Positions 2,020 through 33,174 of a stretch of 64,000 bases of DNA are shown here, piece by piece. The position numbers and the translations under genes are program-made. Within the stretch, counting starts at the first letter, position 1; each line of letters starts with the position of its first letter. The stretch lies in IMG/VR virus record IMGVR_UViG_3300044638_006750, positions 62,001-126,000 of that record; one strand, 5' to 3'. A model generated the notes under the pieces. It made no database searches. It saw only the letters and a list, made by a program, of their open reading frames with translations, and was not told the origin of the DNA.

Positions 2020-5000
2020 ATGGCTGGATTTAATTTAACCGCTCAGTTAAATATAGTTGGACCCAATAATCTTAAACCAGTCATATCTAATCTGCGTAAA
2101 CAGCTGAGTAGTGCTGGTGGTAGCATTACTCTAAATATTAATCCTAATATATCTACTTCTGTTAATAATTTAAATAAGTCATTACAGTCTTTGGATAGTA
2201 CATTAAAAAGCATCAATGCTTCTGCCTCTTCTGTCGCAGCATCTTTGAGACAAATAGGATCAGCAGCAGGTACGGTTAATATAAAATCTGTCCCTAAGGA
2301 TATCGCAGCAGTAACACAACAATCTCAAAAGCTACAACAGCAACAGTCACAAACAGCTGTCGCAACAAAAGCATCAACAGATTCTATGGTAGAATTTGGA
2401 AAGCAGTCTGCTTTAGCTATTCGCAGATTTGCTGCTTTTACATTAGTTACTGGGATTATTTATAAGGTTACAAGCGCGTTTGGAAATGCTTCCGCAGAAT
2501 TTATTAAATTCAATCAACAGATGGTACAACTATCTCAGGTTACTGGATCATCCCTACAAAATTTGGCTGGGCTAGAAAGAACCATTACGTCTTTATCAAC
2601 CAGTCTAGGTGTTTCTTCTAGTTCTTTGATAGATGTATCGAGTACCCTAGCGCAAGCAGGCTTATCTGCGCAAGAAACCGAAGAAGCATTATCTGCTCTT
2701 GCCAAGACCACCCTAGCTCCTTCGTTCGGGAATTTAAACAATACCGTAGAAGGTAGTATTGCTCTTATGCGACAGTTTGCGATTTCTACAGGACAACTCG
2801 AATCTGCACTAGGTTCGATAAACACAGTAGCTGCTAAATTTGCAGTAGAAGCAGATGATATTATTACGGCAATTCAGCGTACCGGTGGTGTGTTCGCCGC
2901 GTCTAGTAAAGGAGTAGCAGAAGGCACTGAGGCTCTGAATCAATTTATAGCAATTTTTACTAGTGTTAGAGCAACTACTCGTGAAAGCGCCGAAACGATT
3001 GCTACTGGCTTGAGAACAATTTTTACCAGAATACAAAGAAGAGATACAATAGAGCTATTAAAACAGTATGGTATACAATTAACAGATTTAGAAGGTAAAT
3101 TTGTTGGTCCTTATGAAGCTGTAAAAAGATTGAGTCAGGGTTTGGCTGGTTTAGATACAAGAGATGTCAGATTTTCCTCTATCATAGAAGAGCTTGGTGG
3201 GTTTCGTCAAGTAGGTAAAGTTATTCCATTATTACAACAATTTACTGTTGCTGAAAGAGCCCTAATGGTTGCTCAGAGAGGACAAGGGTCTCTGACCTCC
3301 GATGCTGCAAAAGCACAGCAAGCTTTAGCTATACAGATGGCAAAGGTACAAGAAGAATTTGTTGCGATGGTTCGTAAAATTGGTAGTTCTAATGAATTTC
3401 AGACAATGGTAAAGATGGCTTTAAATTTAGCTAGTGCCTTTATTCAGGTGGCTGATTCAGCTAAATATGCTTTACCAGCAATTACCGCTTTATTAGCTGT
3501 TAAGGGTACTATTGGAGCATTTAGGTTTGCCTCTGGTTTTGCAAGTGGCATGAGAAGAGGTGGAGGTGCTGCTGGATTAGGAGAAAGATTAAGCGGTGCT
3601 CCAAGAGGTTATGCTCAAGGTGGACAAATACCAGTTGCATTAGAACCAGGAGAGATGGTTTTCGTTGGAGAGTCTGCTCGTAGAGCAGGATATGGTAATC
3701 TAAGAAGATTGAACAGAGCCGGTGATCGTCCTAATCCAAGAGTAGCTTTAAATCGTGCCTCCGGAGGAGGCATATTTATGGTTCCTGGTTCTGGAAGAGG
3801 AGACACATTTAAGACTAATCTACCAGAAGGTTCTTTTGTTATAAAAAGAAAATCGGTTAGAGCAGTTGGTGCAGATAATATTGCTCAGATGGCTGCTACC
3901 GGTGGACAAATTAGACAAAATTTTGCCAGAGGAAGTTCCGGAGGACTATCGGCTGCTCCTAGGTTAGCTAGTGCCGGCAAAACTGTGAGAGCACATGTAT
4001 CTACTCCTACATCTATGACCGAAGAGATGAGGCAACAAATTCTAGACTATTATACTAAATCTGGTAAAAAAATTCCTAAAAAATTCCAACCGTCATTACT
4101 TGGTTCGTCATCAGCAGAACTTATAGAAAATCTTACAATAGGGTTACCCTATAGATATAATGAAGCCCTTAAGAGAGGATCTAATTCTGTTATTCCTCTA
4201 AGAGATTTCATCAAAAGTTTCGACAGGCCAGACTTTTTGAGGTCGTTAGGCACAAGTGGCAGGCAAAAAAAACAGTCACTACCACAATTATCGAAAACCG
4301 ATGAAGCAGAATTAATTAGATTACTCAAAAAAGAAACGATAAGAAACTCCACAAGACTCACCAAAGATATTCCAGGTCTTGCAAAAGGCTCTAGGATTAT
4401 ATCCAGTGATACTCAATTACAAAGTTTATCTGGTATAATTAAAGAATTCTATAAGAAAAAACAGACAGCACTAGTAAGACCAGTCGAAATGATGAGCTTC
4501 TATAGTCATCAGGGCAGAACACAACACAGAGACTTTTTACCAACATCATTATCTGAGGTTTTATCTCAAGGATTGTCTAAAAGATATATGGGTGGCTTAA
4601 TTCAGAGGTTAAGCGGAGGTTCAGACAAACCTCTTCAGGGTATGGGGAGGTCACAATTATTGACTGAGGCTAGAAGACTAGGAGTGAATTATGGAAATAT
4701 TGTCTCTTGGTCAGAGTTAGGGAAAAAAGGAGACATAGGAGCACAAGCTCGTTCTAGACTTATTGCAAAACTAGAAGAAGCTAGAATGCTTAGAAAAACT
4801 TCTCAAGCAGCAACATCTGCAAGAGCAAAAAGAACCAATGTTGCAGTTATAGGCGCTATGGCACCTCCCGGAGTTAGAGGTAGTAGCAGTGAAGTTATTA
4901 TTCCTGGTGCGAGAGATAGAAAAACAGGAAAAAGAACACAAGACACTCCAGCTACTCTTCATATAGGTGCTTTAGAGGGTAAAACAGCAGCTAGAGTTAC

Positions 5001-8000
5001 TGCTGTTATTAGAAATCAGACAGCCAGAATAACTCAAAAGGTTATGAAAATTATAGCTCAAGAAGCAAAAATGATTTTGCCAAACGATAATATGGCAAAG
5101 CTTAAAAGAAAACCTATGCATTCTGGTATTGCAGGAGGTTTATTAGAACAAGCTATTTTAGGTTTGATGGGTATAGACAAACCTATGGGCTCTATAGATT
5201 TAGGAGCATCTGGTCTCTCGCCAGAACTAGCCAATGTTTTTGGTATACCGTCTGCATCGGGCGTGCCAACAGATATTACATATGGAGGAGAAAAGGGGAG
5301 AACACTAGAAGAAGCAGCTAAGAGAAAAGCAGTAGGTAAGAGTAGAAACGCCAAAGGACAGAGAACATCTAGTCAGATAGGTAGGGGTTTAGCTGCTATT
5401 AGGGCTTCAAAAGCCATCGGAGGGATTGTACAAAGATTGGCAAATGGAGGAATCACCAGATCTGGTAAATTATCTAGGTCAACTTTCAAACTAATTCCTA
5501 ATGAGAAAGGTATTGGGCCAAGCCCGTTTGCATCAGGGCCAGTAGCCCAACCATTAGACTATAATGCATTAGAGAGATCTGGATTATCAATGGGCTTATC
5601 TCGTCCAATGATAACAAAAGCTATACAAGATGCTAAAATGCTTGGTATTAGTCCAGAAGAAAATATTAGAAAAATAGCATCTGAGGCCCAGTCTAAAAGA
5701 AGACCTGGTTTTACACACAGTACTGATTCTAGATCTATTTTATCTATGCTAAGAAAATCTGGTGGTCCAGTTAATTATGAAGGACCAGCCATGTTTTTTG
5801 CCAAGGGAGGCTCTGTAAAACCTGCTGTTCGCAATGTAGGTTGGATTGACAGTGATTTTCTGAGAAATAGTCCAAAAGCTAAGGCCGAGATGGATAAGCT
5901 CGGTATGAATGTAGATGAATATAAAAGATTTTTAACAGAAGAATCAATTAAAGCTAGAAAATCTGGATCAGTATCGAGATTAACAACGGTGGTCGGTTCT
6001 CCCGGTAGTGGCAAAAGTTCTTTTGCTGAGGGTAATCAAAGAACATCGGTAGCCGATAATGCTAGACTTAGAAAGACACATAGGTTTCCTATAGAAACAC
6101 CAGAAGATGTAGCCAAAGCGAACTCGATAATAGACACAGCGGCCTCTGTTTCTCCAGATAGATTGGTCGATTTGAATCAGTCAGACAGGATCGTTGCATT
6201 ATCTAGTAGCACAAAAGAAGAACAGAAAATATTAAGAAGGCAGTTAAGACATAGAACAGCTACAGGAGATAAACAATACGGTAGAACTCATACTATTACA
6301 GCTCAAGATAGTGGTGAAACTGAAGCGATGCTTCAAATGGGCTTAAGAGACAAAAAGAAATTAGTTACTCTGGGCCTTTTACCCAATTTCAAGAAAAGAA
6401 TTAAAAGACAGAACGAACTACCACTAGTACGAGAAGAACAGGTTAGTCTTGGATTTGGTAGTTTTTCTCCACCCACCAAAGCAGGCCATGATCAGGGCTT
6501 GATGTCCAATGCACAATATAAAAAGCTTGTTCTTGTTGGTCCGAATGAACCTGTTGGGGCCGACCCTCATTCCGCTCGTACAGCACTATTACCACAAGAT
6601 GTTAGACATAGATTGGCTACGAAGGCGTTTCCAGATGCATATGTGAGCAAGAAAACCTCAGGATTTGCTATACCACATGTTTTTGATGTTGGTACTGATC
6701 CAGAAACTGGCAGAAGACTATTTATTCGTAGAGCAAAGGGTAGTGAGGCTTTAGTAGCTGGAAAAGATGAGAAGTCACTCAAAAAATATGAAGAAGCTGG
6801 CTTTGGGGTTAGAGAAGTACCCAGAGACCCAAATGGAGAAAGCGGTACCGCAGCTAGAGAAAGAATATTACGAGGAGATTTTACTGGTTTCCATCCAGAA
6901 GTAGAAAAAGATTTAAGATCTAAAGCCACACAACTCTCTAATAGACAAGAAATATTGCCAAGAATTATTGAGAAAACACAAGAGAGAACTACTAAACAAG
7001 TATCCGAGATTGATAAATCTCTAAGTTCATATCCTTCAAGAATAACAGAGAAGATCAGACAAGAACAACCGGATATGGTTGCGGCTGTAGAATCTTTAAG
7101 AGCTAAAAAAACATCTATTAAAAGTAAAGCTGGTTCTAGACCTCATACAGTTTTAGCTAGACTAGCTAGAAGATATCCAGAAAGATATGGATTGGCACAA
7201 GGAGGTATGCCCCCGAAACCCCAAAAACAATTTGGTAAAATAGGACTAAGATCATCTGGTAAAGAAATAACAGCTTTTTATTTTAAAAATAATGTCAGAG
7301 AAGGATTTGTCACAGCTCATGAGATAGAAAAAGGTATTTGGAATATAGGATTGAGCAAAGCTACTAAAGGTTATGGTCCGAGACTTTACGATGCGGTTAT
7401 GGAAGCTGTAACAGCCAGAGGAGGGGTGTTAACCGCTCATAGAGGGAAGGTGAGTGGTCACGCTAAGAAAGTTTGGGATGTATATGCAAATGAAAGATCC
7501 AAGCCAGATAATAAATATGGTTCTCAGGTATCAAAAATTTCACTAGATTCCAAACACCATACATTAAGTCAAGACCCAAATGATTCTCTTAATTATGGAT
7601 ATCAACAACAGCCAAATATTATCAAGGGTCCAGATATTGTTGATATGAATGACCAAAAATATGATCGTTTTTTACAACAAATGCAGTTTGAGTTTTTAAG
7701 AGCTAATGGAGGAGGTGTCCAACGATCAGTTAGGGGTAATGTAAGACCAATTAAAAAACACTCAATGATTAAACCACAATTACAAAACAATGAACTATCT
7801 ACACTACAATCTCAAATTAATGATCTAGAGTCTAGAAGACAAGCTTTAGCTACTCATACAAAAACTGGATTTTTTGGAGGTAAAAGCAATCCATATCAAA
7901 GAGAAATATATGATTTAGAAGATGAAATAGCAAGATTATCACAAAGACGCTATCTATTATCTCAGAAGAGTGCTCCAACACCCACAGTACTAGCACAGCC

Positions 8001-11000
8001 CAGCGTGATCGCTAGATCCAAACCACAAGCAGTTGTTCCTGTAGCTAGGCCAAAAACAATAATGCCTCAACAGAGACAAAACGTTACTGCCTCATCTCGT
8101 CCTGGTTCAGTCACTATTATGCTGACAAAACAACAAAAATTGGAAATGCGTCAGACCATAGATAGACTTAATAAACAGATAGAACAAGCTAATAACACTA
8201 TAGCCACTTTGAAAAGTCATGATCGAAAACCAGGATTTATTGGTAAATTAACTGGTCAATCGACTAGAAATCCTTATCAAAATGAAATATGGGAAGCAGA
8301 AGCTGAGCAAAGTAGAGCACAAAATGAAAAACGTAAACTACTAGAATTGTATGGAGATCAACTAAATACATATACTGGATTTGCTGCTGGTGGTCATGTT
8401 ATGGCCATGTTGACTCCTGGAGAGGCAGTAATTCCTCCTCCTGAAACTAATCGTATTGGATTATCTACTTTAAGGCGTATGAATTTTGCCGATAAAAATG
8501 GAATGGGTAGAAGCAAATATGCCAAGGGTGGCAATATTGGTATAGTGCCGGGTTCTGGAGACTCAGATTCTTATGGGCCAGTAGCTCTTCCGGTTGGGTC
8601 TTTTGTTATTAGAAAAAGAGCAACAGCAGCCTTGGGGTTGGCCAAGTATTCCAGCGGCGGAGATGTTAAGAAATTTGCTACTGGAGGGTCAACCACAGTA
8701 TCTACATCTCAAACAAATTCTCGTATGCTTGACGTTAGGTCAGCAGGTGGTGTTGATCTTGGTAGCGTATTTGGTACTTCATCTATTGGTAAATTATTAG
8801 ATATAATTAAACCACAACTAGATAGTTTTGGAAATATGATAGATCGTACAACCAAAAGTTTTGGAAATTTGAAACCCGATGTTGTTCAGCAGTTATTTTA
8901 TGAGTATGCCAATGAACTAAAGAGTGGAGTATCTTCAGCAGAAGCACTACGTAATGCAGAAAATAAACTTGCTTCAAATCTTGCAGATTCGGTAGTTTCT
9001 AAAAAGGGTGTTAATGTAAGCAATTCTGGAGTAGAGCTTACATCTCCTATAAATACAAAAAATAAAGATAGTGTTAATGTTCGTAGTGCTGGTGGTATTG
9101 CTATTGGTAACATATCTACTACTAAGGGCCCAGCTGTATTAGATAGTGCTATACAACAACTTAAGCCTCATTTAGATAAGTTCGGATGGATGATAGATAA
9201 GACTACAGCAGAATTTGGAACACTCGATACCAAGGTCGTAAATCAAGCTTATCAGAAATATATTACAGCTATTCGTAACGGAACATCACAATTAGAGGCG
9301 TTGGAAGAAGCTACTCGCACAGTTAAGAGTAGTTCAACTATGGAACAAATGAGAAGAGATGATATCAAGACATCTCGGAGAAAATCACAGTCTGTATTAG
9401 GATCTATAATGGATCCTGTAGGAGCCTTGAATAGATATGGAAGATCTAGGGTATCTCTTGGTCAAGAAAAATTAGATAATCTTACTTTTAGTAAGCAGTC
9501 TCAACAAGTTTTATCTAGTGGGAAAGGTAATTTGGTAGGAGCAGCTACCAATCAAGTATTAAATAATTTAACTAAAGGACTTGGTAATGCATCATTAGCT
9601 GTTTCTGGTTTTATATCTGCTATTGGCAGAGGGGGTGGAGTAGGTAGTGCCATATCATTAATGAAGGCTGGATTTGCCCGCATGGCTGGGAACACTACAG
9701 GACTAGCCGCTAAATTTATTGGATTACAAAGAACTATTGTGGCTACAGAAGGTAAATTAAAGGGTATGACCAAAGGTCAAGCTCAACAAGCTCTTAAAGA
9801 AGGGAAAATTACTAAAGCCGAATATAAAGAGGCTTTTGGACTTAGAGGTAAAAGTAGAGCTGTATACCACAGTGCCAAAGATCAACCACCAGCGTATAAT
9901 GCTAAATTTGAACAAGAAACAAAAACGGCGCGAGCAAAAGCTAAAAAACAAGCTTTACAAGACGCTGGTTTTGGAAGACAAGCGGACACATATATCAAAG
10001 ACGGAAAAACCTATGTAAAAAGAGATGCATCCGGTAAGGCAGTAAATACACAAGTAGGAGCTAAGACACAAGCTATTATGGAAGCTAGGGATATGGCCAC
10101 GGTTAACCCTGCGTCATACGGACCCCAAAGCTCCAATGCTATTTTAGCCACTAGAAGAGCAGGGGCTACTGCTCAAGACCAGATGAGAGCAATAGTTCAT
10201 GGAGGTGGTGGCGGACCTCCTCCAAAAGGGCCAAGAGGAGCTAAAACAGCTGGAGCCGTTAAAGCACCAACCAATGTACCAGATCAACCAGGACAAAGAG
10301 GTGGTGGTGGCGGTGGTATGGGCGCATATATGGCCGAAATGGGATTATCCATGGCTGGTAGCGCTATCGCAGATCAATATGCTAAATCATTAGGAGGAGA
10401 AAAGACTTTAGCCGGTAGACAAGCGGCTAATTATGGCGGTAGTATTGTTGCTGGTGCTAGTACAGGCATGATGATGGGAAGTATGATTGGTTCAGTTGTC
10501 CCTGGTCTTGGCACCGTAGTTGGAGGAGCTATTGGAGCAGGAGTTGGAGGTCTAGCTGGTGCAGGATACGCCGCTCTTAATAGTAAAGAAGTAGCAGCAC
10601 AGTTTAGTAGTGAGCAAAGACAGGATAAAATAGGTAGACACACCACTAAACTTAATGAACAATTAACGACAATGAATAATAGAGATGTGTCTGTAGAAAC
10701 CCGCAATAGAGCCAGGGCAGAATCCAGACAAACTCTAATAAAAATGAATGAACTTTCATCTGAAGAACAAAAATCAGGAATGGAAAATGTTGGATATTTA
10801 TCTTATCAAGCAAGATCCACAGCTTCAGAAAGAGCTAATTCTGCTCAAGGAGTAGCGGACGCAAATTTATCTTCTATAGAAACGGAGATGCAGACTACTG
10901 GCAAAACGCTGGCTCAGGTTAGACAGTCTATGGATCCTGCACAGTGGGCTGCTATGACAAATACCATAGCTGATTCTGATCAAGCATATCAAGAACAAAA

Positions 11001-14000
11001 AGAAAAATTAAGAGGGAATAGTGCCGAACTAGAAAAAGAAAAACAAAAAGCCGTTGAGCGTCAAATGGCTTTCTTAAAGGTAAAAGAAGAAGCTATTCAA
11101 GCAGCCAGAGAAAATGCTAGACTAAATAAAGCGATGCAGAAAGTTACTGTATCGTTTGAAAAAATGGCAGATGCTATGAGCAATGCCGCAGCTAGAGCAA
11201 ATCAAGTTATGAAGAATGGACAGATAGGAATAGAATCCATAGACAATCCATTAGCTGCCAATCAAGTTGGTCAAATTTCTAAATCTGCCGATATAATCTC
11301 CAACCCTGAAGCATATTCGATTAAAGAAGTTGAGGACGCTGCTCGTCAATATGCTGGTGTAGCAGGTTCTAGCTCTGAACAAATGGTTCAAGCTGCTGTA
11401 TTACCTCGCAAATTAGAACAAAGTTTTGGCTCCGCTATGGTTGAAGCAAGAAGTTCTGGCAAGAATGATGAAGAGACCAGAAGCTCTGTTAAGTCCGCTG
11501 TTATGAATACTGTGAAAGCTGCATTTGGAGAAAATATAGGCAATGACATGCAAAAGAAGATAGATGACTTCCTAAACAGCAAGGCGGCATCTGGAGAATT
11601 ACAAAATATAGATTTTAACGATCTGTTAAAAGAAATTCCTGGTCTTGCAGACAAGATGGCCTCCTCTAGCAAAGTTATGAAAGCACTACAAGATCAGGCT
11701 CAATCTGCTGCCAATGCTATTGCAATGATGGGTGATGCTGCCCAGAAAACAGCATCTAAAGGCCAAGATATCAGAAATGCTAGAGCAGATACTTTTTCAA
11801 CTATTGCTAATAGTACCTTGGCATTTAGAAGAGGTACTGGAGAGAAAATTTCTTGGCAGGCTGATGCTGGAGTAAGAACACAAGCTCGTGCAATAAGATT
11901 AGGTACTACAGCTGATGTTGCAGCCAGTCCACAAAAAATGTTAGGAAGATACCTTGCTCTTCAACAGGGTGCCGACGCAGCCTCTAAGAGACAACAACAA
12001 GTGAATGAAGAACAAAAGGGGGCAATGCTTGCTGGAGGAGATCAAACTCAGGGTGCTATAGATAAGATGCAACAGGCTGCCAATACCACAGCAGAATTTG
12101 CACAAGCTACAAAACAAGCTCGTGAAGAAATTTTAGGATTGCCGAATGATATTAAAGATAACATTAATGGTATCTTAAGTGAATTACAAGACGTAATGCA
12201 AGAAAGAAGCGCTAAAATCGGAGCAGCTAGTGGATTCATGGAGAAGATGTTAACATCTACTCCTAAAGACCTTAGAAAGATGGGCAACACATTCAATAAT
12301 CTTAATCAAACTCTATCTGGGAAAGGTGTTAGTTTCGAAGAGTCATATTCTGCCAAAACTGCGTATGATCAAGTCAGGAATCAGGGCGGGACTCATATGC
12401 AAGCCCAAAGAGCCGCCCAAGAAGCATACGCTCAGGAAAGCAGTGATACGATTAGTATGGCTAAAGAATTAGCTCCTCTCCTAGGAGCCGTTGATCCAGA
12501 CGCACAAAATAAGATGATGGCTAGTGTTTATGAAAATATGTTTGCTGCTAGAGGCATGGATCCTTCGCAAATGAAGGTTGGCGATAAGAGCATGAAAGAC
12601 TACTTGGATATGATGAAGAAAGGAGCTAAAGAAGATCCAAAAGTTAAAGCTTTGAACGATGCTTTAGCAGCACAACAAGCAGCTCTTGTACAAGCTAATG
12701 CTGCTATTGAAGCAATTTATACTAAAGATCAGGCAGACATACAACAAAAAACAGGAGAAGTTATTCTAAATGCTATGCAACAAGGCGCAGAAGCTGTAAA
12801 AAAAGCTATGGAAGAAGCTAAAGTTGCTGGTATAAGCCCTCCGGGAGAAGCAGGAGCAGCTAACTCTCCACAAGCTCAGGCTCAAGCCCTTAATGAAGAA
12901 CAAACTCAACAAAGAAAGGATCAGAACCTCAATGATATAGAAGCAGCCAAAAAAGTTATTAATGATCCGGCAGCTTCTAAGGAAGACAAAGAAAAAGCTG
13001 AGAAAGTTATTGCAGAAAAAGAGCAAGAGAATGCGGTCCTTACAGGTGGACTAAGCGGCACAAGAGGACTATCGTCTGCTGAAAATATGACATTTAAAGA
13101 ACATGCTCTTCCGGGAGAAACTCCTGAAGATTTTACGAAGAGAAGGCGCAAATTGATGGATATGACAGGTCAATCTACTCCACAACAAGTGTCACAAAAT
13201 CCAACAACTCCACAACAAAACGCTGCTGGAAATGCGGCAGCAACACCTTCACCAACTACCACATCATCTACCCCATCATCCACATCTCCTGCTGGTTCAA
13301 CTTCTCCAGCCGGTCAGGCAGCAGCATCTCAAGCTGCTACTCCACAACCACCAGTAAGAGCAATTACTAGTCAGCAAAGAGAAGACGAGATTGTTCTACA
13401 ACAAGGAGAGATGGCACAAAACGAGAAAATTATTAACGATCTATCTTCTAGCGAAGAAGACAAAGAAAATGCTAGACTTGAGATACAAGGATCACAACAT
13501 AAAATAGCGATGTTACAAGGAAAAAGCAAGGAAGAAATAGCAGAAAGTGTTTATGGAACTAAATATGAAGACATGTCTCCTGAACAGAAAGAATACTTAG
13601 ATCTACAACATTCAGCTTACTCAAATAACTATAGTAGACAATATGGTAGTTTAGCTCCGCAGACCCCAGCTCCAACTTCTCAAGCCGCAAGTAATCAGGC
13701 TGCGGCACCAGCACCCAATACCGGCACTGGTCCATCTTCTCCTCCGTCGTTTGGTCAAACCATGCAAGCTGCTATGACAGCAGGACAGAATAATAATGTT
13801 GCTTATAGATCTCAAGATGGTTTATCAGGTGCTACTCGTAGTGTGATTGCAAATCTGCCTCCGCAAGTGCAAGGTATGGTTACTCAAGCCGCACAAAGCA
13901 ATCCAGCTTTAGCAACAGCAATACAAAATGGAGACCTAGCAGCTGCACAAGCAGCATTACCACCAGAAGCAATGGCTCAGATACAACAAGTAATGGCAGG

Positions 14001-14874
14001 GGCTGGTAATGCGGCATTAGCATCCGGTTCTATGCAAGCATTAAATACTGAAAGACAAGTTTCTGCCGCTCAAGGAGCAATGGCTACTGGTTCTGTTATG
14101 ACCAAACCCTCTACTAGTACTGGTCAAAAGACACCACAATGGCAGCCCTCAAGTGGTCCAATGGGATTAAATAATGTACATCAAGAGGCGTATCTCAGAG
14201 GTATGACCACGCAAGAAGTAAATTATGAAAGACAACAACAATATTTGAGTAGCTTGAATCCCGAGACTAGAGATATAGAAAAAAGGAAACTTGGTAAAAG
14301 ATTATTAAAACCAAGCGAACGACAAGAAGCTGCCATACAAGCACAGAAAGATAGTGCAGCTGCCGCGGCGGCACAACAGCCAGGGGTAGTTCCAGCCCCT
14401 GTAGGAAGTGCTCCACAAATGCCACAAACTGTACCCGGTCAAAATACCAATGGTCAGATGGTGCCTCCAACCGCACCTGCTACTCAAGCCGGATATGTTA
14501 CTCCTCCATCAGAAGCTGGTTCTCCGGTTCCGGCTCCAAGACCAGCACAAAACGTACCCGGACAACAAAATCAAGGCGCTGGTGTATTACCCGGTATGGG
14601 CGGATTCGAAGCCTTTGCCAGCAAATTGGATACATTATTGACCAAATTAGGAGAGGTAAATATTCCTACGGAAATTAGACTTACAAGCGAAAGTATAGGA
14701 GTCAATGTCACATTAAATGGTGCGGAAGTTATGAATAAGATGCCAGAACAAATTAGAGGTCAAATAGTACAAGAAGTTGTAGCAAAACTTCGAGAATACG
14801 ACAAGGGAACATCTGGAGAAGGTGCAGCACTAAGTCCAAAAATTGGTGGACAATCTACGAATACAGACGTATAA
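2020..14874 (+). CDS. Giant tape measure protein (4284 aa) with internal enzyme-like cargo domains
   Basis: SD AGAGGA at about 2005. The N-terminal region (about 2500-3360) has TP901/PhageMin_Tail-type motifs (LAQAGLSA..., INTVAAKFAVEADDI, AETIATGLRTIFTRIQR, LGGFRQVGK). Lambda gpH-like YAQGG...PGE.V / FAAGG motifs, long Ala/Gln/Lys-rich helical regions and a glycine-zipper hydrophobic segment are present. Confidence 0.92.
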   Translation: MAGFNLTAQLNIVGPNNLKPVISNLRKQLSSAGGSITLNINPNISTSVNNLNKSLQSLDSTLKSINASASSVAASLRQIGSAAGTVNIKSVPKDIAAVTQQSQKLQQQQSQTAVATKASTDSMVEFGKQSALAIRRFAAFTLVTGIIYKVTSAFGNASAEFIKFNQQMVQLSQVTGSSLQNLAGLERTITSLSTSLGVSSSSLIDVSSTLAQAGLSAQETEEALSALAKTTLAPSFGNLNNTVEGSIALMRQFAISTGQLESALGSINTVAAKFAVEADDIITAIQRTGGVFAASSKGVAEGTEALNQFIAIFTSVRATTRESAETIATGLRTIFTRIQRRDTIELLKQYGIQLTDLEGKFVGPYEAVKRLSQGLAGLDTRDVRFSSIIEELGGFRQVGKVIPLLQQFTVAERALMVAQRGQGSLTSDAAKAQQALAIQMAKVQEEFVAMVRKIGSSNEFQTMVKMALNLASAFIQVADSAKYALPAITALLAVKGTIGAFRFASGFASGMRRGGGAAGLGERLSGAPRGYAQGGQIPVALEPGEMVFVGESARRAGYGNLRRLNRAGDRPNPRVALNRASGGGIFMVPGSGRGDTFKTNLPEGSFVIKRKSVRAVGADNIAQMAATGGQIRQNFARGSSGGLSAAPRLASAGKTVRAHVSTPTSMTEEMRQQILDYYTKSGKKIPKKFQPSLLGSSSAELIENLTIGLPYRYNEALKRGSNSVIPLRDFIKSFDRPDFLRSLGTSGRQKKQSLPQLSKTDEAELIRLLKKETIRNSTRLTKDIPGLAKGSRIISSDTQLQSLSGIIKEFYKKKQTALVRPVEMMSFYSHQGRTQHRDFLPTSLSEVLSQGLSKRYMGGLIQRLSGGSDKPLQGMGRSQLLTEARRLGVNYGNIVSWSELGKKGDIGAQARSRLIAKLEEARMLRKTSQAATSARAKRTNVAVIGAMAPPGVRGSSSEVIIPGARDRKTGKRTQDTPATLHIGALEGKTAARVTAVIRNQTARITQKVMKIIAQEAKMILPNDNMAKLKRKPMHSGIAGGLLEQAILGLMGIDKPMGSIDLGASGLSPELANVFGIPSASGVPTDITYGGEKGRTLEEAAKRKAVGKSRNAKGQRTSSQIGRGLAAIRASKAIGGIVQRLANGGITRSGKLSRSTFKLIPNEKGIGPSPFASGPVAQPLDYNALERSGLSMGLSRPMITKAIQDAKMLGISPEENIRKIASEAQSKRRPGFTHSTDSRSILSMLRKSGGPVNYEGPAMFFAKGGSVKPAVRNVGWIDSDFLRNSPKAKAEMDKLGMNVDEYKRFLTEESIKARKSGSVSRLTTVVGSPGSGKSSFAEGNQRTSVADNARLRKTHRFPIETPEDVAKANSIIDTAASVSPDRLVDLNQSDRIVALSSSTKEEQKILRRQLRHRTATGDKQYGRTHTITAQDSGETEAMLQMGLRDKKKLVTLGLLPNFKKRIKRQNELPLVREEQVSLGFGSFSPPTKAGHDQGLMSNAQYKKLVLVGPNEPVGADPHSARTALLPQDVRHRLATKAFPDAYVSKKTSGFAIPHVFDVGTDPETGRRLFIRRAKGSEALVAGKDEKSLKKYEEAGFGVREVPRDPNGESGTAARERILRGDFTGFHPEVEKDLRSKATQLSNRQEILPRIIEKTQERTTKQVSEIDKSLSSYPSRITEKIRQEQPDMVAAVESLRAKKTSIKSKAGSRPHTVLARLARRYPERYGLAQGGMPPKPQKQFGKIGLRSSGKEITAFYFKNNVREGFVTAHEIEKGIWNIGLSKATKGYGPRLYDAVMEAVTARGGVLTAHRGKVSGHAKKVWDVYANERSKPDNKYGSQVSKISLDSKHHTLSQDPNDSLNYGYQQQPNIIKGPDIVDMNDQKYDRFLQQMQFEFLRANGGGVQRSVRGNVRPIKKHSMIKPQLQNNELSTLQSQINDLESRRQALATHTKTGFFGGKSNPYQREIYDLEDEIARLSQRRYLLSQKSAPTPTVLAQPSVIARSKPQAVVPVARPKTIMPQQRQNVTASSRPGSVTIMLTKQQKLEMRQTIDRLNKQIEQANNTIATLKSHDRKPGFIGKLTGQSTRNPYQNEIWEAEAEQSRAQNEKRKLLELYGDQLNTYTGFAAGGHVMAMLTPGEAVIPPPETNRIGLSTLRRMNFADKNGMGRSKYAKGGNIGIVPGSGDSDSYGPVALPVGSFVIRKRATAALGLAKYSSGGDVKKFATGGSTTVSTSQTNSRMLDVRSAGGVDLGSVFGTSSIGKLLDIIKPQLDSFGNMIDRTTKSFGNLKPDVVQQLFYEYANELKSGVSSAEALRNAENKLASNLADSVVSKKGVNVSNSGVELTSPINTKNKDSVNVRSAGGIAIGNISTTKGPAVLDSAIQQLKPHLDKFGWMIDKTTAEFGTLDTKVVNQAYQKYITAIRNGTSQLEALEEATRTVKSSSTMEQMRRDDIKTSRRKSQSVLGSIMDPVGALNRYGRSRVSLGQEKLDNLTFSKQSQQVLSSGKGNLVGAATNQVLNNLTKGLGNASLAVSGFISAIGRGGGVGSAISLMKAGFARMAGNTTGLAAKFIGLQRTIVATEGKLKGMTKGQAQQALKEGKITKAEYKEAFGLRGKSRAVYHSAKDQPPAYNAKFEQETKTARAKAKKQALQDAGFGRQADTYIKDGKTYVKRDASGKAVNTQVGAKTQAIMEARDMATVNPASYGPQSSNAILATRRAGATAQDQMRAIVHGGGGGPPPKGPRGAKTAGAVKAPTNVPDQPGQRGGGGGGMGAYMAEMGLSMAGSAIADQYAKSLGGEKTLAGRQAANYGGSIVAGASTGMMMGSMIGSVVPGLGTVVGGAIGAGVGGLAGAGYAALNSKEVAAQFSSEQRQDKIGRHTTKLNEQLTTMNNRDVSVETRNRARAESRQTLIKMNELSSEEQKSGMENVGYLSYQARSTASERANSAQGVADANLSSIETEMQTTGKTLAQVRQSMDPAQWAAMTNTIADSDQAYQEQKEKLRGNSAELEKEKQKAVERQMAFLKVKEEAIQAARENARLNKAMQKVTVSFEKMADAMSNAAARANQVMKNGQIGIESIDNPLAANQVGQISKSADIISNPEAYSIKEVEDAARQYAGVAGSSSEQMVQAAVLPRKLEQSFGSAMVEARSSGKNDEETRSSVKSAVMNTVKAAFGENIGNDMQKKIDDFLNSKAASGELQNIDFNDLLKEIPGLADKMASSSKVMKALQDQAQSAANAIAMMGDAAQKTASKGQDIRNARADTFSTIANSTLAFRRGTGEKISWQADAGVRTQARAIRLGTTADVAASPQKMLGRYLALQQGADAASKRQQQVNEEQKGAMLAGGDQTQGAIDKMQQAANTTAEFAQATKQAREEILGLPNDIKDNINGILSELQDVMQERSAKIGAASGFMEKMLTSTPKDLRKMGNTFNNLNQTLSGKGVSFEESYSAKTAYDQVRNQGGTHMQAQRAAQEAYAQESSDTISMAKELAPLLGAVDPDAQNKMMASVYENMFAARGMDPSQMKVGDKSMKDYLDMMKKGAKEDPKVKALNDALAAQQAALVQANAAIEAIYTKDQADIQQKTGEVILNAMQQGAEAVKKAMEEAKVAGISPPGEAGAANSPQAQAQALNEEQTQQRKDQNLNDIEAAKKVINDPAASKEDKEKAEKVIAEKEQENAVLTGGLSGTRGLSSAENMTFKEHALPGETPEDFTKRRRKLMDMTGQSTPQQVSQNPTTPQQNAAGNAAATPSPTTTSSTPSSTSPAGSTSPAGQAAASQAATPQPPVRAITSQQREDEIVLQQGEMAQNEKIINDLSSSEEDKENARLEIQGSQHKIAMLQGKSKEEIAESVYGTKYEDMSPEQKEYLDLQHSAYSNNYSRQYGSLAPQTPAPTSQAASNQAAAPAPNTGTGPSSPPSFGQTMQAAMTAGQNNNVAYRSQDGLSGATRSVIANLPPQVQGMVTQAAQSNPALATAIQNGDLAAAQAALPPEAMAQIQQVMAGAGNAALASGSMQALNTERQVSAAQGAMATGSVMTKPSTSTGQKTPQWQPSSGPMGLNNVHQEAYLRGMTTQEVNYERQQQYLSSLNPETRDIEKRKLGKRLLKPSERQEAAIQAQKDSAAAAAAQQPGVVPAPVGSAPQMPQTVPGQNTNGQMVPPTAPATQAGYVTPPSEAGSPVPAPRPAQNVPGQQNQGAGVLPGMGGFEAFASKLDTLLTKLGEVNIPTEIRLTSESIGVNVTLNGAEVMNKMPEQIRGQIVQEVVAKLREYDKGTSGEGAALSPKIGGQSTNTDV
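5812..6400 (+). other. P-loop NTPase/kinase-like domain within the TMP
   Basis: Walker A in TTVVGSPGSGKSSF (GSPGSGKS at 5995-6018), a Walker B-like IIDT, and a LID-like RRQLRHR, as in the NMP-kinase/AAA_33 fold. Confidence 0.7.
6440..6920 (+). other. HIGH-superfamily nucleotidyltransferase (cytidylyltransferase/NMNAT-like) domain within the TMP
   Basis: GFGSFSPPTKAGH (6451-6489) matches the G-x-F-x-P-P/T-x-x-G-H signature. LVAGKD matches the VxGxD strand. ESGTAARERILRGDF (6838-6882) matches the S-[AG]-[ST]-x-x-R...GD motif. Confidence 0.72.
7210..7700 (+). other. GNAT-like acetyltransferase domain within the TMP
   Basis: Motif A-like ATKGYGPRLYDAVME (about 7360-7404), then GVLTAHRGKVSGHAKKVWDVY (motif B-like). 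Confidence 0.62.
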
Positions 14875-27882: not shown

Positions 27883-30800
27883 ATGGCGATATATGTTAAA
27901 GGATATAATCCCTGGAATAATCCACAGATATACGGCAGTTTTGGAGACACAAGTTGTGGACAATATCTAGGCGCTGGTGGTATCTATAATGTAACAGCCT
28001 CGTCTTTATTTTATCATAACACTTTTGCTCCAGAGTCTATTGATATTAGCACTGGGGTACAGTCATTTAGCTCTTGTTATACAAATCCGATGGCTGCTGG
28101 TTATAATAATTCTCCAGATTCATGTCCACCATATGTAGGGTCTTATGCCATAGTAGATAATAATGGGGACGTCTATCTACATGCTCCCAAGCATTATGTT
28201 TATGCTGGTCAGTTTGATGCTAATCCTTATCAAACTATGTTTAATAAGTTTGCTTCTTGGCCAAAGCTTGCAGATAAAAAATGGCAAAAAGTTATATTAA
28301 CTCCATTCTCTCTTCATGCCCTTACAACAACTGGACAGTTATGGACTATTATCAACAACAATGTCTATCAAAGTCTTTCTCAGAGTAGTCTAGAGGCATA
28401 TAGTGGTTTAGGTTTAGCATACAGAAGAAGAGTTCCAACTATTTTCGGTAGTATAGCTGGTGGTGATACTTTTATCAGTAGAACATATCCTATGTATGAT
28501 CGTCCATTATCATCGGTATTTAGTTATGCAAATACTATAGATATTTATAGCCCACAAAGAATCGCTTTGTTTGGACCGGAATATAGGAAGACAATTGGAG
28601 ATGGTAATCAAGGAACACTTACGACCATACTTAACGCTAAGGCTGGCATATCTTCATGTTCAAATGGACCTAGTTGGAGATTTAACGATGGTGGTAATTA
28701 TGCTAAAATTTTAGATATGTATAATTCAGTTTACATTTCTTCTCATAGTAGTGTTGCTAATGATGGTAGAACTAATTATACCTCTCCAGGAGATAATCAG
28801 CACAGATCATATACTGTTCCTAGTCCTTATTATACTGATTGGCCCAATATCAGGTCTGGTTCACCAACCTGTGTTCCTGCAAGTAGCGGCAATTGGTTAA
28901 CAAGAATTACTTTAGAAGGTTCTATAGCAGATAATTGGAAAGATATATATCATGTCCATGGATGTTTTTATGGGATCAATACTCTAAACCAAGTTTATGT
29001 TTGGGGTCCAAACGTCCCTACTCTCGGAGTAGTAGACTATCCTAGATTAACGACCTTGGGCGCAGACGGAGGATTAAGGAATATACAAGGAGGATCTACT
29101 GGCCCAGGCTACTCAGCATATACAGCATATGGCATAGACGGTAATGATGATCTAAAATTATGGACCGATATTTCATTAACGCCTGTAACTGTTTATGGTT
29201 CATTTAAAAAAGTTATAGCTGTAAATTCTCTTATGGGCTATAAAAGTGCAGCAAATGGTTTTTTCATAGCTTTAACCAAAACAAATGAAATAGTATTATT
29301 ATACAACATATCATATAATCCAGGTATTGCATTCGATAGTAATCTGAGACCAGCACATAGTTTATCTACCATACCACTAGCATCAACACGAGGAGCGACA
29401 TGGACAGATATTGCTCTAAGTGCTCCGTGGTTTGGATCCGGATCGGGTGTTAGTATAGACGCTATTAGGAGCGACGGTACGGTATTCAATATCTCTGGTA
29501 TTACTACGACATTTGCTGGTATAGTAACACAGCTATCTAATCAACTATCTGCAAATTCATATTTTGCAATGACATCTAACGATGAATTTAGTCAAACCTA
29601 TGCAAATTATTCTGGCTCAAGTATCTTTTCAAATTCTTTAAGTAATATTAATAATACTACTACGAAATATATTACATTCCCCAATGTAGTATATAGCGAT
29701 ACCAATTCATTGATTCCCACACCAACTCCAACCGTAACAAGTACAAGCACACCACCTCCAACACCAACAGCTACTCCAACTAGAACTCCTCCTCCAACCC
29801 AAACTACGACGAATACTTCTACAGTATCTGTTACTCCTACTCAAACACCAACCGGAACAACTACATCAACACCAACCAATACCACAACTCCAACTGTTAC
29901 GCCGACCACAACTCCTACTGCTACCAATACAAGAACACCAACCAATACTTCCACTCCGACTAATACTACAACTCCGACTAATACTCCCACAATCAGTCAA
30001 ACACCAACCAACACCCCCACCATTAGTTTGACACCAACTAATACCGTCACAAGCAGCACTACACCAACTAATACTGCTACTAATACACAAACCCCAACTA
30101 ATACTGTTACGTCTACTATCACTAGCACTCCGACACGTACACAATGTTATTTTACCGACGTTATAAAAAATCCCAGTTTTGAAAATAATGATACTAAAAT
30201 ATTAGATAATTGGGATTATTATAATGTTTATGTATTAGGTGGGCCACAATTAACTGCCGGCTACCTCGGTGGTCAAGGAGGAGTAGGACCAATAAACGAT
30301 GGTAAATATGCTGTTAGTTTAACAGGAAATGCAAATGGCTGGATAAGTCAGGCATTCTATACCAATGTTGGAGATGCGTATGCTATACGCTTCAAATATA
30401 CTGGAAATCCAGGCAACACTAACACACCCAATAATGTATTGAAAACATTAAGAGTCGGTATTGGAGAAAATGATAAATCTATAAATTGGTCTAATGTTAG
30501 TGATAGAGATAATATTAATCCAATATCTTCTACAATGCAAGTGACAGACTTCTCGTTCTCTGCTTCATCTTATCCTTCTCATAGCTTAACAAATTTACAA
30601 TGGGAAGACGGAATCATAACATACACAGCAACGTCCGAATTAACTAGAGTTGTTTTTCAGGATTTATCTACAAGTGTCGATGGTAATGATGGAATCATAA
30701 TAGATAACATCATATCATGTGGTGCTCAATATATAACAAAAACTCCAACGCCAACTTTTACGAATACTCCAACCAATACTCCCACTCAAACAGCAACAGC

Positions 30801-33174
30801 AACTAATACTCCCACCAACACCCCAACTCCTACTCAAACCCCTTCTTCTCCAGAAGATAAGTATTTGTACTTCTGGGGTAAAAATATAGTAAGCGATACT
30901 GCTGGAAAAACTTTTAGAGTTATTCCAGATAGTAGAACATATGTTCAAGTAGCAGACAACCCAAGAATAGATTCTAAATTAGCAACACAGTTATGGTCTA
31001 AAACCTTGGCATTATCCATAGGAGAAAATTTAACATTTAGTTTTGCTGCTAGTGAAAATGGGTCAGAACTATACGGCTGGGGCGGTGCTGATGATAGAGA
31101 AACAGATATCTTTACAGAATTTTATTATCCAGAACTAATTTACAGATTTAATAAGCAAAGAATTCTAGATATTAATTATGGTCAGACAAGTAGAAATATG
31201 TATGTATTATATGTTCTGACCAAGGTGACTGGCGATGATATTGTAAGCTTTCCTGGATTTGGTTTGATATTACCGGGTTATAACCATACCGTTAACCCTC
31301 CATCTAGTATTTATCCCAACATTATTAGAAGCGGGAGTGCAGTCTTACCATTACCAAATGGTGTTAGAGTTCAAGCTGTAAGAGGCACGAATATTCTGTA
31401 CTCAATACCAATTGGCAACAACAGTAGTTCATTGGGTAAATTAGCTAATATAGAAGATATGGTTAACGGCATAGGAACAGGGCTTTCTGACCCCAAGACT
31501 TCGATCAGAATACTTAATACTATTGTCTACTCTGGTGGTAAAATAGTAACAGGTGTAGGCACACTTGTAGAACTTAGTGGATATAATGCCGTAGAAACTT
31601 CATTCCCATCCCTAGACCTAACAAATATTAGTTCGGCTAAAGATATTGATGTGGTTACTAAATTTGATAGAACTACAGGCATTAAAACGGTTACCAGCAG
31701 AATTCCTCGTGCTCCAGATAATAATCTCCCTCCATTATCTTATAGTGAGGGTCCATACCATTCTATGATGATTAGTCAAACAGGTAAGCTATTCGCTAGA
31801 GGATCAAATGAAGGACGTTTTGGCAACAATGGTACTGGTGGAACAACATCTTTTGTGCAAATAGGTTCAGACAATAATTGGAAAAACGTAATCTGTGGCG
31901 TTAACCACACACTTGCCCTAAAACAAGACAACTCGCTATGGAGTTGGGGCTGGAATAACAATGGACAGTTGGGTTTAGGAGATAATTTAGACAGATACAT
32001 TCCTGTTCAGGTGCCGGGAGACTGGAGAAAAGTCAAGGTATTTGATGGTAATATTGGACAACATATTAACTATGGTATTCAAGGAGATGGTTCTATTTGG
32101 TATTGGGGATCCTATATAGGAAATGCTCCGGTTTTATTAGATAACTCTATAGAGTATGACGATTTTTCATTTAGTTGCAGATCATATGATCCTACGCCAA
32201 CACCAACTAATACCGCAACACCAACACTAACACCGAGTAATACGGCTACAAATACTCCTACAAATACTCCCACAATATCTAGTACTCCTAGTCAGACTCC
32301 GACAAATACCAGAACTCCCACAATCACTCCGAGCAACACACCTACTATCAGTATCACTCCAACTAATAGTCCTACAATAAGCCTGTCTCCAACAAATACC
32401 CCGACTATTAGCATTACGCCAACTAATACAAAGACTCCTACCAGAACTCCTACAACAACACCAACTAACACAGTAACACCTGGTTTAACAGCGACACCTA
32501 CCGCTACACCAACACAAACGCCAACAAACAGCGTAACTCCATCGAGAACTCCAAGTAACACTCCTACAAACACATTTACTCCAACCAACACAAGAACACC
32601 CACTAATACTCCAAGCTATTCTCCGACTAACACTGTGACTCCAAGTAATACTCCGACCAATACTATTACTCCTTCGAATACGGCTACTCCAACTCCAAGT
32701 CCCAGATATGTCAATGTATTAACAGCAAGTCAAACCAATAAATCGGCTATTATAGGTTTATCAGTGTCTCATACCTGGAGTCAAAGTTTTGTTAATAATA
32801 TTTTTGGTAGACTTTCTAGAATAGAAACTATGTTTGTTGGATTCTATGCTGGTACGGGCCAATTAGAGGTATATAGTGGACAACCAGGGAATAATTTAAC
32901 ACTATTACATAGTCAGAATGTTAGCATTTCTGCTAGCAATTCTTATGATTATACTATATGGGATATTACCTCTGGCGTTAATATTAATTTAATTCCTGGA
33001 AATACATATACTATTAAATTTATTCCTAATAATGACTTACCAGATCCATATGGTATGGTAATTAGTTTGAATAATCAATATATTGGAGGAACCTTCTGTG
33101 AAGATGAATTGTGTATTAAAACTGATAGAGATCTAGTCTTTAGGGCTTATGTTGGGGTGTTGGCCACATCCTAG
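27883..33174 (+). CDS. Large fibre/adhesin protein (1763 aa): RCC1-like repeats, PT linkers, intact DUF642/choice-of-anchor-C-like domain, C-terminal beta-sandwich
   Basis: RCC1 consensus [30 protein letters not shown] (about 31890-31980). DUF642-like KNPSFEN...[23 protein letters not shown]...IIDNI (about 30160-30720). Three long PT tracts. Confidence 0.8.
29715..30140 (+). repeat. Pro/Thr-rich linker in 27883..33174
   Basis: Direct translation. Confidence 0.9.
32190..32703 (+). repeat. Pro/Thr-rich linker in 27883..33174
   Basis: Direct translation. Confidence 0.9.

Follow-up and report, generated by a model that had tools for sequence, protein, structure and literature searches.

The 64,000-nucleotide window analysed here comprises positions 62,001 to 126,000 of the IMG/VR virus record IMGVR_UViG_3300044638_006750 and carries on its plus strand one stop-free open reading frame (ORF) of 4284 amino acids (2020–14874) that, judged from its sequence, is a giant tape measure protein (TMP) of the TP901 type. 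TMP residues 188–393 (2581–3198) constitute the core domain and match PF10145 (PhageMin_Tail) in Pfam with an E-value of 2.2e-23 and 83.7 bits against a cut-off of 33.2. Beyond the core, TMP residues 1265–1729 (5812–7206) form a 465-residue cassette in which a P-loop kinase-like domain (cassette residues 1–205; 5812–6426), a HIGH-superfamily nucleotidyltransferase domain (206–371; 6427–6924) and a C-terminal helical hairpin ending in P-x-x-Y-G (6925–7191) follow one another; these features, like all those of the cassette and the TMP core, lie on the plus strand. An earlier reading made from the letters alone (the sequence-only reading) had placed a kinase and a nucleotidyltransferase at 5812–6920. 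The start is correct; position 6920 marks the end of the nucleotidyltransferase domain alone, and the cassette itself continues to 7206. Every motif quoted in that reading is found within the single uninterrupted frame: the upstream border motif FFAKGG (5794–5811), the Walker A sequence GSPGSGKS (5995–6018), IIDT (6127–6138), GFGSFSPPTKAGH with the TxGH signature (6451–6489), LVAGKD (6751–6768), SGTAARERILRGDF with the ISGTxxR signature (6841–6882) and the downstream border motif GLAQGG (7189–7206). Taken singly, motifs of this kind are near chance level in a protein of TMP length (0.86, 0.41 and 0.26 expected in shuffles); of 5000 shuffles, a single one had all three in the right order inside a stretch of 320 residues, and conservation is a stronger argument than these chance statistics. 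Two minus-strand ORFs that overlap the cassette (5775–6014 and 6567–6929) are taken as spurious because the plus-strand frame is strongly constrained.

The alignment used below holds 76 cassette sequences, most of them 28–44% identical to the window sequence, and residues are given in cassette numbering (K68 is K1332 and H226 is H1490 of the TMP). With this alignment AlphaFold2 models the whole cassette at a pLDDT of 92.7 and a pTM of 0.87, and residues 1–212 alone at a pLDDT of 93.0. Because the pTM is high for a two-domain chain, the model indicates that the two domains would form one rigid body with a fixed interface. The chain opens with a β-strand (vGyIDxDvl; 5824–5856) that ends in D13-x-D15, has a pLDDT above 90 at residues 5–12 in the model of the N-domain and is followed by three helices; the two aspartates may provide a metal ligand or a catalytic base. 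The P-loop unit then runs in the order β1 (56–62), Walker A, a helix, β2 (87–93), D99 (6106–6108), β3 (105–110), β4 (126–131), a lid-like helix (135–151) bearing R148, a loop bearing G157-R158 and D166, and β5 (184–189), with the lid-like helix and its loop encoded at 6214–6309. Residues 206–371 adopt a Rossmann-like domain with the TxGH motif at its start and the ISGTxxR motif at its end. The first of these is a GxFxPxT(x)xGH signature, the TxGH variant of HxGH, into which the phage of the window has placed one additional residue (TKAGH), and the second, ISGTxxRxxxxxG, is the counterpart of KMSKS. Between them, helices 252–259 and 262–272 carry an HSxRTAxFxxxxR segment (6565–6606) that appears to resemble the F-T-x-x-E-R motif of PPAT and archaeal NMNAT enzymes. 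Two helices of about 33 residues each (372–404 and 420–454; pLDDT 93–96) form the hairpin, whose terminal P456, Y459 and G460 are invariant in one alignment (A1) and fall below the 90% near-invariant level in the 76-row alignment (A2). The two folds proposed by the sequence-only reading, a P-loop domain directly before a HIGH-type (TxGH/ISGTxxR) nucleotidyltransferase, are thus both present in a confident model, and the transferase half also matches NMNATs by fold and by profile.

The residues expected at the two putative active sites are strongly conserved. D13, D15, K68, D99, R158, G216, H226, R256, R265, Y326, S344 and R349 are identical in all 76 sequences, and position 69 of Walker A is S or T in all 76. 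The residues conserved in at least 90% of the sequences include R7, G10, G62, G65, G67 (75/76), D82, R87, T89, R91, D125, S131, R148 (75/76), D166 (73/76), E171, P220 (75/76), T222 (72/76), G225 (74/76) and T346 (74/76). Of the lid-type arginines in the stretch that had been read as an RxxxR lid, those that are conserved are R148 and R158. Compared with the closest relative, P0001, whose cassette is 87% identical and lies on a 203.5-kb metagenomic contig (ENA ERZ27272074, contig k141_1777699) of identical gene order, the cassette has a ratio of non-synonymous to synonymous substitution rates (dN/dS) of 0.065, the lowest among the TMP regions compared, with 0.059 for the kinase-like half, 0.053 for the transferase half, 0.10 for the TMP core and 0.16–0.63 for other TMP regions, all of these values being approximate at a dS of about 1.3, which is near saturation. 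Low dN/dS together with invariant residues is the pattern that would be expected of working enzymes and not of a spacer.

We consider the chances about even that the cassette is an autonomous, catalytically competent two-enzyme cargo within the TMP, which would carry out coupled phosphorylation and nucleotidylation after delivery to the cytoplasm. The same conservation bears on a non-enzymatic role, in which the cassette would be a nucleotide-binding or structural block that helps the TMP to fold, the tail to assemble or its length to be set, with motifs that are relics. Such a role would suit a module that all homologues have in much the same place, shortly behind the TMP core, and in which the classical Walker B aspartate is often lost. 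Relics, in turn, would hardly leave the catalytic-type residues of both domains invariant across sequences that are about 25–40% identical, nor give a lower dN/dS than any other compared part of a TMP whose spacers are nearly neutral (0.44–0.63), and we hold this role to be very unlikely.

The C-terminal domain of the putative enzyme pair is the more readily placed. Its TxGH motif aligns with that of Bas30_86 (GKFAPLTRGH), of MJ0541 and of PPATs, and its ISGTxxR motif with GISGTKIREAI of MJ0951, SGTEIR of MJ0541 and ISATMIR of Bas30_86. Searched against the PDB, the alignment profile matches MJ0951/UPF0348, a HIGH_NTase1 protein, with an E-value of 8.3e-7 over the ISGT motif and the following helices only, and Bas30_86 (9X6F) with an E-value of 7.7e-6 over residues 9–158, essentially the whole NMNAT domain; weaker matches are to the archaeal NMNAT MJ0541, many PPATs, a NadR-family protein and glycerol-3-phosphate cytidylyltransferase. 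With the whole model as query, Foldseek returns the NadM NMNAT/Nudix structures 2qjt_B and 2qjo (probability 1.00 and 0.99) and a plant NaMNAT (0.69). The NadM matches have template-modelling (TM) scores of 0.24–0.33, low because the query was a two-domain model, at 13–14% identity. Against the viral library BFVD, two unnamed proteins are matched at a probability of 1.0 and phage NMNATs at 0.90 and 0.75. When the members were scanned one by one with Pfam, PF16581 (cytidyltransferase-related C-terminal region) appeared in 58 of 76 and PF01467 in 27 of 76, all below threshold (in the ten members tabulated, at most 26.0 bits against 26.7 and at most 17.3 against 21, respectively), while the cassette sequence of the window itself has no Pfam match to either. 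The hairpin overlaps profile positions 53–148 of PF16581, a family for which a full-text literature search gave no mention. PHROG 'cytidyltransferase' families are matched by 18 and 16 members, and NCBIfam models by members scattered over cyt_tran_rel, NaMNAT, PPAT, NMNAT/Nudix, RfaE domain II and RibF, again below threshold. Membership of the HIGH/cytidylyltransferase-like superfamily (the PF01467 clan) is well supported, and since no Pfam score exceeds its curated threshold the domain must belong to a very divergent branch; within the superfamily, an NMNAT-like subfamily is our best guess.

The N-terminal domain cannot be placed in any named family. Sequence profiles match it in the neighbourhood of Walker A only (UvrA, ABC proteins and a designed P-loop protein), and matches to UvrA, ABC, STAND and NB-ARC proteins were accordingly set aside as confined to that region, as were Foldseek matches to MeaB and other G3E GTPases (TM 0.09–0.26, low probability; MeaB-type 0.15–0.26 with the isolated domain) as P-loop noise. 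For the isolated domain the sole Foldseek match with reasonable overlap is the zeta toxin 6epi_F with a phosphorylated UDP-sugar bound (probability 0.94, TM 0.48, 210 columns, root-mean-square deviation 6.9 Å, E-value 0.022). In a language-model Atlas, the N-terminal half falls near AAA_33/Zeta_toxin/KTI12 clusters and the whole cassette near viral clusters labelled 'Zeta toxin/AAA_33 + cytidylyltransferase-like', in both cases with scores of 0.84–0.86 that serve as leads only. Pfam at E ≤ 0.1 finds AAA_33 in 3 of 76 members and Zeta_toxin in 1 of 76, and there is no significant profile match. These results weakly suggest a divergent P-loop domain of kinase-like topology that is closer to AAA_33 and zeta-type kinases than to RNK. 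With that clade, which includes PNK, the cassette shares Walker A, in the model a five-strand kinase-like order, an arginine-bearing lid helix and an aspartate after β2; it differs in having an extra N-terminal strand with the invariant DxD and a poorly conserved Walker B aspartate, and no significant sequence or fold match links the two. An acceptor-activating aspartate has precedent in PNK and zeta-type kinases, and D99 is by analogy a candidate for that role. The strand order of the model, the lid arginines and the conserved acidic positions where strands end (D13/D15 and D99) lead us to prefer 'kinase' to a generic ATPase.

Two alternatives draw on these P-loop matches. In the first, the cassette would poison the host: a kinase of the zeta or AvrRxo1 kind would phosphorylate UDP-GlcNAc or NAD (or its precursors) and arrest cell-wall synthesis or metabolism at entry, with the nucleotidyltransferase supplying or modifying the kinase substrate. 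The zeta toxin is the only fold match with a reasonable TM score, Zeta_toxin is among the Atlas leads whether the query is the whole cassette or its N-domain, and the invariant N-terminal IDxD appears to resemble the catalytic IDxD segment of zeta toxins. However, the Foldseek match is poor in both E-value and deviation, the Pfam model touches a single member, the IDxD of the cassette stands before Walker A and not after it as in zeta toxins, and the strictly conserved fused nucleotidyltransferase would be left without a reason. We regard host poisoning as highly improbable. In the second alternative, the cassette would repair or modify nucleic-acid ends, a PNK-like 5′-OH kinase acting with a transferase on RNA, DNA or (TmcAL-like) tRNA so as to mend tRNAs cut by anticodon nucleases or to cap and protect the incoming DNA end beside the TMP. 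The AAA_33/Zeta/KTI12 leads point to a clade that holds polynucleotide kinases, weak Pnkp1 matches occur, the top PDB profile match, MJ0951, is in the HIGH_NTase1 family, to which TmcAL belongs as well, and the conserved basic residues R256, R265, R302, K318, R338 and R349 would suit a polyanionic substrate. Yet the MJ0951 match is limited to one motif and the helices after it, Pfam detects no ligase, phosphatase or RNA-binding domain in the cassette, and HIGH-type transferases mostly act on small molecules, so that end repair appears quite unlikely.

The nearest characterised relatives of the transferase half lead back to the two-enzyme cargo and to its possible substrate. The sequence-only reading had likened the pair to NadR in reverse order. 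The fusion of a kinase-like domain with a HIGH transferase stands; membership does not, because both the RNK domain and the NMNAT-then-kinase order fail, the kinase-like domain preceding the transferase in all 76 homologues. Against E. coli NadR, hhalign aligns the NMNAT half alone (E-value 0.0023; probability 12%, low because the template was a single sequence) and leaves the P-loop domain unaligned to the RNK domain, and no NadR or RNK structure is found in the top 50 Foldseek matches. Bas30_86 (PDB 9X6F/9X6H) is a NadR-like enzyme of the phage NARP3 pathway, in which nicotinamide riboside (NR) is converted to NAD+, and phage NadR-like enzymes of this kind act as counter-defence (PMC13464706). 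Its RNK domain matches the cassette at Walker A only (score −1.3), and K10, S37 and the Y86/W90 loop, by which it contacts NMN (PMC13464706), are aligned with positions that are small or variable in the profile of the cassette, which has invariant basic residues of its own (R256, R265 and others). The cassette accordingly resembles NadR as an analogy of chemistry only and is not a member of that family.

A strict NAD+ reconstitution pathway would nevertheless be the literal extension of this likeness: a reversed NadR converting NR to NMN and then to NAD+, countering Thoeris, DSR2 and SIR2-HerA as in NARP3. The best profile match of known function is the Bas30_86 NMNAT domain, which shares the unusual TxGH, the best fold matches are NadM and phage NMNATs, NadR-like genes are found in 770 phage records, and NARP3 shows that conversion of NR to NAD+ rescues phages (PMC13464706). 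On the other side stand the P-loop domain, which does not align with the NadR RNK and has none among its top 50 fold matches, and the NMN contacts of Bas30_86, which lack conserved counterparts. The remaining sub-threshold matches are spread over PPAT, NaMNAT, RfaE-II and RibF. NARP3 depends on the importer PnuC for its NR; the window showed no such importer in a survey that covers the tail region only. A virion is commonly assumed to contain about 3 TMP copies, far too few to serve a pool of about 10^6 NAD+ molecules. Since only about 3 enzyme copies would enter per infection, rebuilding of the bulk NAD+ pool is implausible and a scarce target fits better; we judge strict reconstitution unlikely. 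More likely targets than bulk NAD+ are scarce molecules of high leverage, for example nucleotides of immune signalling, immune signals derived from NAD or the ends of nucleic acids. As NMNATs are the closest relatives of known function, a pyridine nucleotide would on sequence grounds be the single most likely substrate class, and the sequence-only reading was right to say that the letters do not reveal the substrate.

For the two-enzyme cargo as we propose it, the TMP would exit the tail ahead of the DNA and take the module into the host cytoplasm, where the module would refold. It may there phosphorylate and then nucleotidylate a small molecule of the nucleotide type (X-OH to X-P to X-P-P-nucleoside), which would equal the chemical logic of NadR in passing from NR through NMN to NAD+. 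The cytoplasm is the only compartment with ATP, and a cytoplasmic site of action is proposed because both domains need NTPs; phages with the cassette would then probably send an enzyme that uses ATP into the host before their DNA. The analysis shows the folds, the motifs, their conservation, the constraint and the confinement of the module to TMPs. Catalysis, cytoplasmic delivery, the coupling of the two reactions and the nature of the substrate are all points that we infer. Several observations weigh against this interpretation. Every Pfam, PHROG and NCBIfam match of the cassette lies below the curated cut-off, the isolated N-domain gives zero Foldseek matches at E ≤ 1e-3, and the choice of kinase over ATPase rests on topology and on the positions of aspartates and arginines. 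IIDT keeps its aspartate in only 32 of 76 sequences and so is no conserved Walker B. The near saturation of dS softens the argument from constraint, and the phages that carry the cassette are known from metagenomes only. Moreover, three copies of a folded 465-residue module should not fit the lumen of a tail tube, so the module, being too large when folded, must travel unfolded or sit elsewhere in the virion.

The distribution of the cassette indicates a conserved autonomous unit that, by the sequences searched, is restricted to giant TMPs. An exhaustive phmmer search against 1.84 billion cluster representatives (50% clustering) retrieved 87 homologous proteins, 84 with E ≤ 1e-10 and 67 with E ≤ 1e-30. 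Nearly all of the 87 have 2000–7300 residues and align with the cassette over its full length; the short matches cover part of it only and look like fragments. Nine relatives from an indexed database are all 3367–6693 residues long, eight of them with PF10145 and three named TP901-family TMP by their source (JGI). In a 5.8-billion-protein index, profile searches found no free-standing relatives, neither at 255–814 residues with the whole cassette nor at 143–455 residues with the transferase half. As a single-sequence query the cassette gives nothing significant in Pfam, PHROGs or the PDB, and tblastn against 50,697 GenBank phage records likewise gives nothing significant. A BLAST coverage map of the TMP of the window against 70 giant homologues, which had been found via the cassette itself, shows two regions common to most of them, the TMP core (TMP residues 1–600) and the cassette. 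A second relative that was examined is, like P0001, metagenomic.

Inspection by eye places a border motif some 5–10 residues upstream of the cassette in most of 75 homologues, in the form GG-h-h-Q-[KR]-F-x-x-GG or, in one sub-lineage, G[FY][IV]PNFA. At the other end a border motif directly follows the terminal YG in about one fifth to one quarter of the homologues, again by eye, and in the others comes after a spacer of 25–40 residues. Since the cassette starts near a border motif in most homologues and is often followed by another, FFAKGG and GLAQGG are judged to be real module borders, and the discrete cassette that the sequence-only reading had delimited by them within a TMP is upheld, the carrier being identified by its PF10145 match. 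The recurring motif [FYL]-[AS]-x-G-G marks module borders elsewhere in the TMP as well: it is found at 3610–3624 and 5437–5451 (TMP residues 531 and 1140), on either side of the cassette (TMP residues 1260 and 1725), and at 8380–8394, 8518–8532, 8647–8661 and 8674–8688 (TMP residues 2121, 2167, 2210 and 2219). Candidate roles for it are those of a protease site, a docking peptide and a flexible joint. Some border motifs are followed by GGx(I/V)...PGE(x)V...G...LRRLN repeats (3622–3747 and 8392–8650; TMP residues ~535–576 and 2125–2210), a repeat type (…TDTVPAMLTPGEFVVN…) that occurs many times in homologous TMPs.

Other modules accompany the cassette. Directly after it, TMP residues 1730–1900 (7207–7719) carry an invariant GYGPxLYD...E...R...W motif at a dN/dS of 0.084; this strongly constrained module recurs in 19 other TMPs, where its place with respect to the cassette varies, and neither Pfam nor the PDB gives a match to it. 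A GNAT identity, suggested by the motif GYGPRLYD, finds no support in the PDB or Pfam and was dropped. In the homologous TMP P0004, residues ~829–1002 match the ADP-ribosyltransferase exoenzyme domain PF03496 (E-value 2.7e-9; 37.1 bits against a cut-off of 23.4), so that some TMPs of the cassette family carry, on this sequence match, toxin-type effector domains. An ADP-ribosyltransferase needs a cytoplasmic substrate, which supports the view that TMPs of this family may carry cargo that acts in the cytoplasm. By eye, P0002–P0008 also contain DFDxTL (HAD-like), LYHELTHQ (HExxH zincin-like), DGDTF (staphylococcal-nuclease-like) and an E-x-K nuclease-like block; the HAD-, zincin- and staphylococcal-nuclease-like modules were not retained, none being confirmed by Pfam at E ≤ 1e-3 in five TMP segments.

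In its remaining parts the TMP appears to be a mosaic of constrained modules and free spacers, because residues 2251–2900 (8770–10719) are near-neutral (33% identity to the relative L001, dN/dS 0.63) while the flanking modules are conserved. Within this poorly conserved region lies a second Walker-A-like string of the form [AG]x4GK[ST] (9832–9855; TMP residues 2605–2612), which was rejected as a real motif, 0.86 such strings being expected per shuffle. A Gly-rich hydrophobic segment at TMP residues 2728–2848 (10201–10563, plus strand) consists of poly-Gly runs followed by a long Gly/Ala/Met-rich stretch; together with residues 483–501 it is the only strongly hydrophobic stretch of the TMP, it lies on the C-terminal side of all cassettes, and it is possibly the membrane-inserting part of the protein. 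Downstream of the TMP on the same strand are large proteins, one with tail-fibre-type PHROG matches and several with RCC1 and laminin-G domains, and the gene order from TMP to tail proteins is identical in relatives. Four of these, 906–2219 residues long, have RCC1-like β-propeller repeats (27883–33174, 33186–39845, 42165–44885 and 44897–48166), one of them with a laminin-G/concanavalin-like domain in addition, and are presumably tail fibre or baseplate proteins. A further ORF of 1923 residues (52904–58675) has zero Pfam matches.

A wider interpretation, which we offer tentatively and think less likely to be right than wrong, is that the giant TMPs of widespread uncultured large phages are modular effector carriers. 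Their most conserved cargo would be a hitherto undescribed kinase–nucleotidyltransferase that enters before the DNA and acts within seconds on a scarce target of the nucleotide type, for instance an immune signalling nucleotide, a molecule derived from NAD or a DNA/RNA end. The usual view of TMPs is that of length rulers and channel formers, sometimes with a cell-wall-degrading domain. A conserved nucleotide-dependent pair within one would imply that some of the TMP arrives in the cytoplasm still able to refold and that ready-made enzymes act before any phage gene is expressed. The cassette would then be the first case of a TMP that delivers a pair of ATP-dependent enzymes acting in the cytoplasm, and it would open a new route of pre-emptive counter-defence; if the target were NAD-related or a signalling nucleotide, it would add a protein-delivered layer to the NAD+/nucleotide arms race beside NARP1–3, which are expressed after entry. 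Independently of its role, the cassette is a compact, confidently modelled enzyme candidate of 465 residues that has no significant match in the curated libraries searched.

Several known systems share one or another property with the cassette. With NadR and Bas30_86 it has in common a P-loop kinase and an adenylyltransferase with (H/T)xGH and IS(A/G)TxxR motifs on one chain, and Bas30_86 is also phage-encoded and of the TxGH variant; the cassette differs in its reversed order, its unrelated P-loop domain and its unconserved NMN contacts. Moreover, NadR-like proteins are free-standing cytoplasmic enzymes of ~350–410 residues made after infection, whereas the cassette is part of a virion protein. 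The NadM/NatV-type NMNAT–Nudix proteins (2QJT, 2QJO) and the archaeal NMNAT (1F9A) are the best fold matches of the transferase domain and share the SGTxIR form of its second motif. Unlike the cassette with its kinase-like partner, the NadM/NatV type is joined to a Nudix hydrolase, and where NadM and archaeal NMNAT have a basic residue in the G(K/R)FxP motif, the cassette has a small one (GSFSP in the window, at a position that is not conserved).

Among virion proteins, the polyvalent proteins are likewise very large virion-associated chains that combine unrelated enzymatic domains and are predicted to enter the cell together with the DNA, and their listed domain types include the ADP-ribosyltransferase that is present in P0004 (PMC5512222); the TMP of the window combines the two-enzyme cassette with at least one further conserved module to which no fold is assigned. 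The nucleotidyltransferases of polyvalent proteins, in contrast, belong to the Pol-beta superfamily, and the carrier of the cassette is the TMP itself. The terms 'tape measure', 'P-loop kinase', 'polynucleotide kinase' and 'NadR' do not occur in that paper (PMC5512222), a term search of a jumbo-phage survey gave no mention of a kinase–nucleotidyltransferase pair or of a TMP carrier, and a full-text literature search yielded no report of a TMP with such domains. Embedded muralytic domains are known from the TMPs of T5 (pb2) and mycobacteriophage TM4. There too an enzymatic module is inserted in the TMP and acts during entry; these modules act on envelope peptidoglycan without ATP, whereas the cassette holds two predicted nucleotide-dependent enzymes of the cytoplasmic type. 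Lastly, PAPS synthase, CoA synthase (PPAT and dephospho-CoA kinase) and HldE join a kinase and a nucleotidyltransferase on one chain, and PPAT uses TxGH. The kinase–transferase pairing and the weak PPAT and RfaE-II matches recall these housekeeping enzymes, with which the cassette shares superfamily motifs only. What is new by comparison with all of these systems is the putative effector module itself and the use of a TMP as the carrier of cytoplasm-type enzymes.

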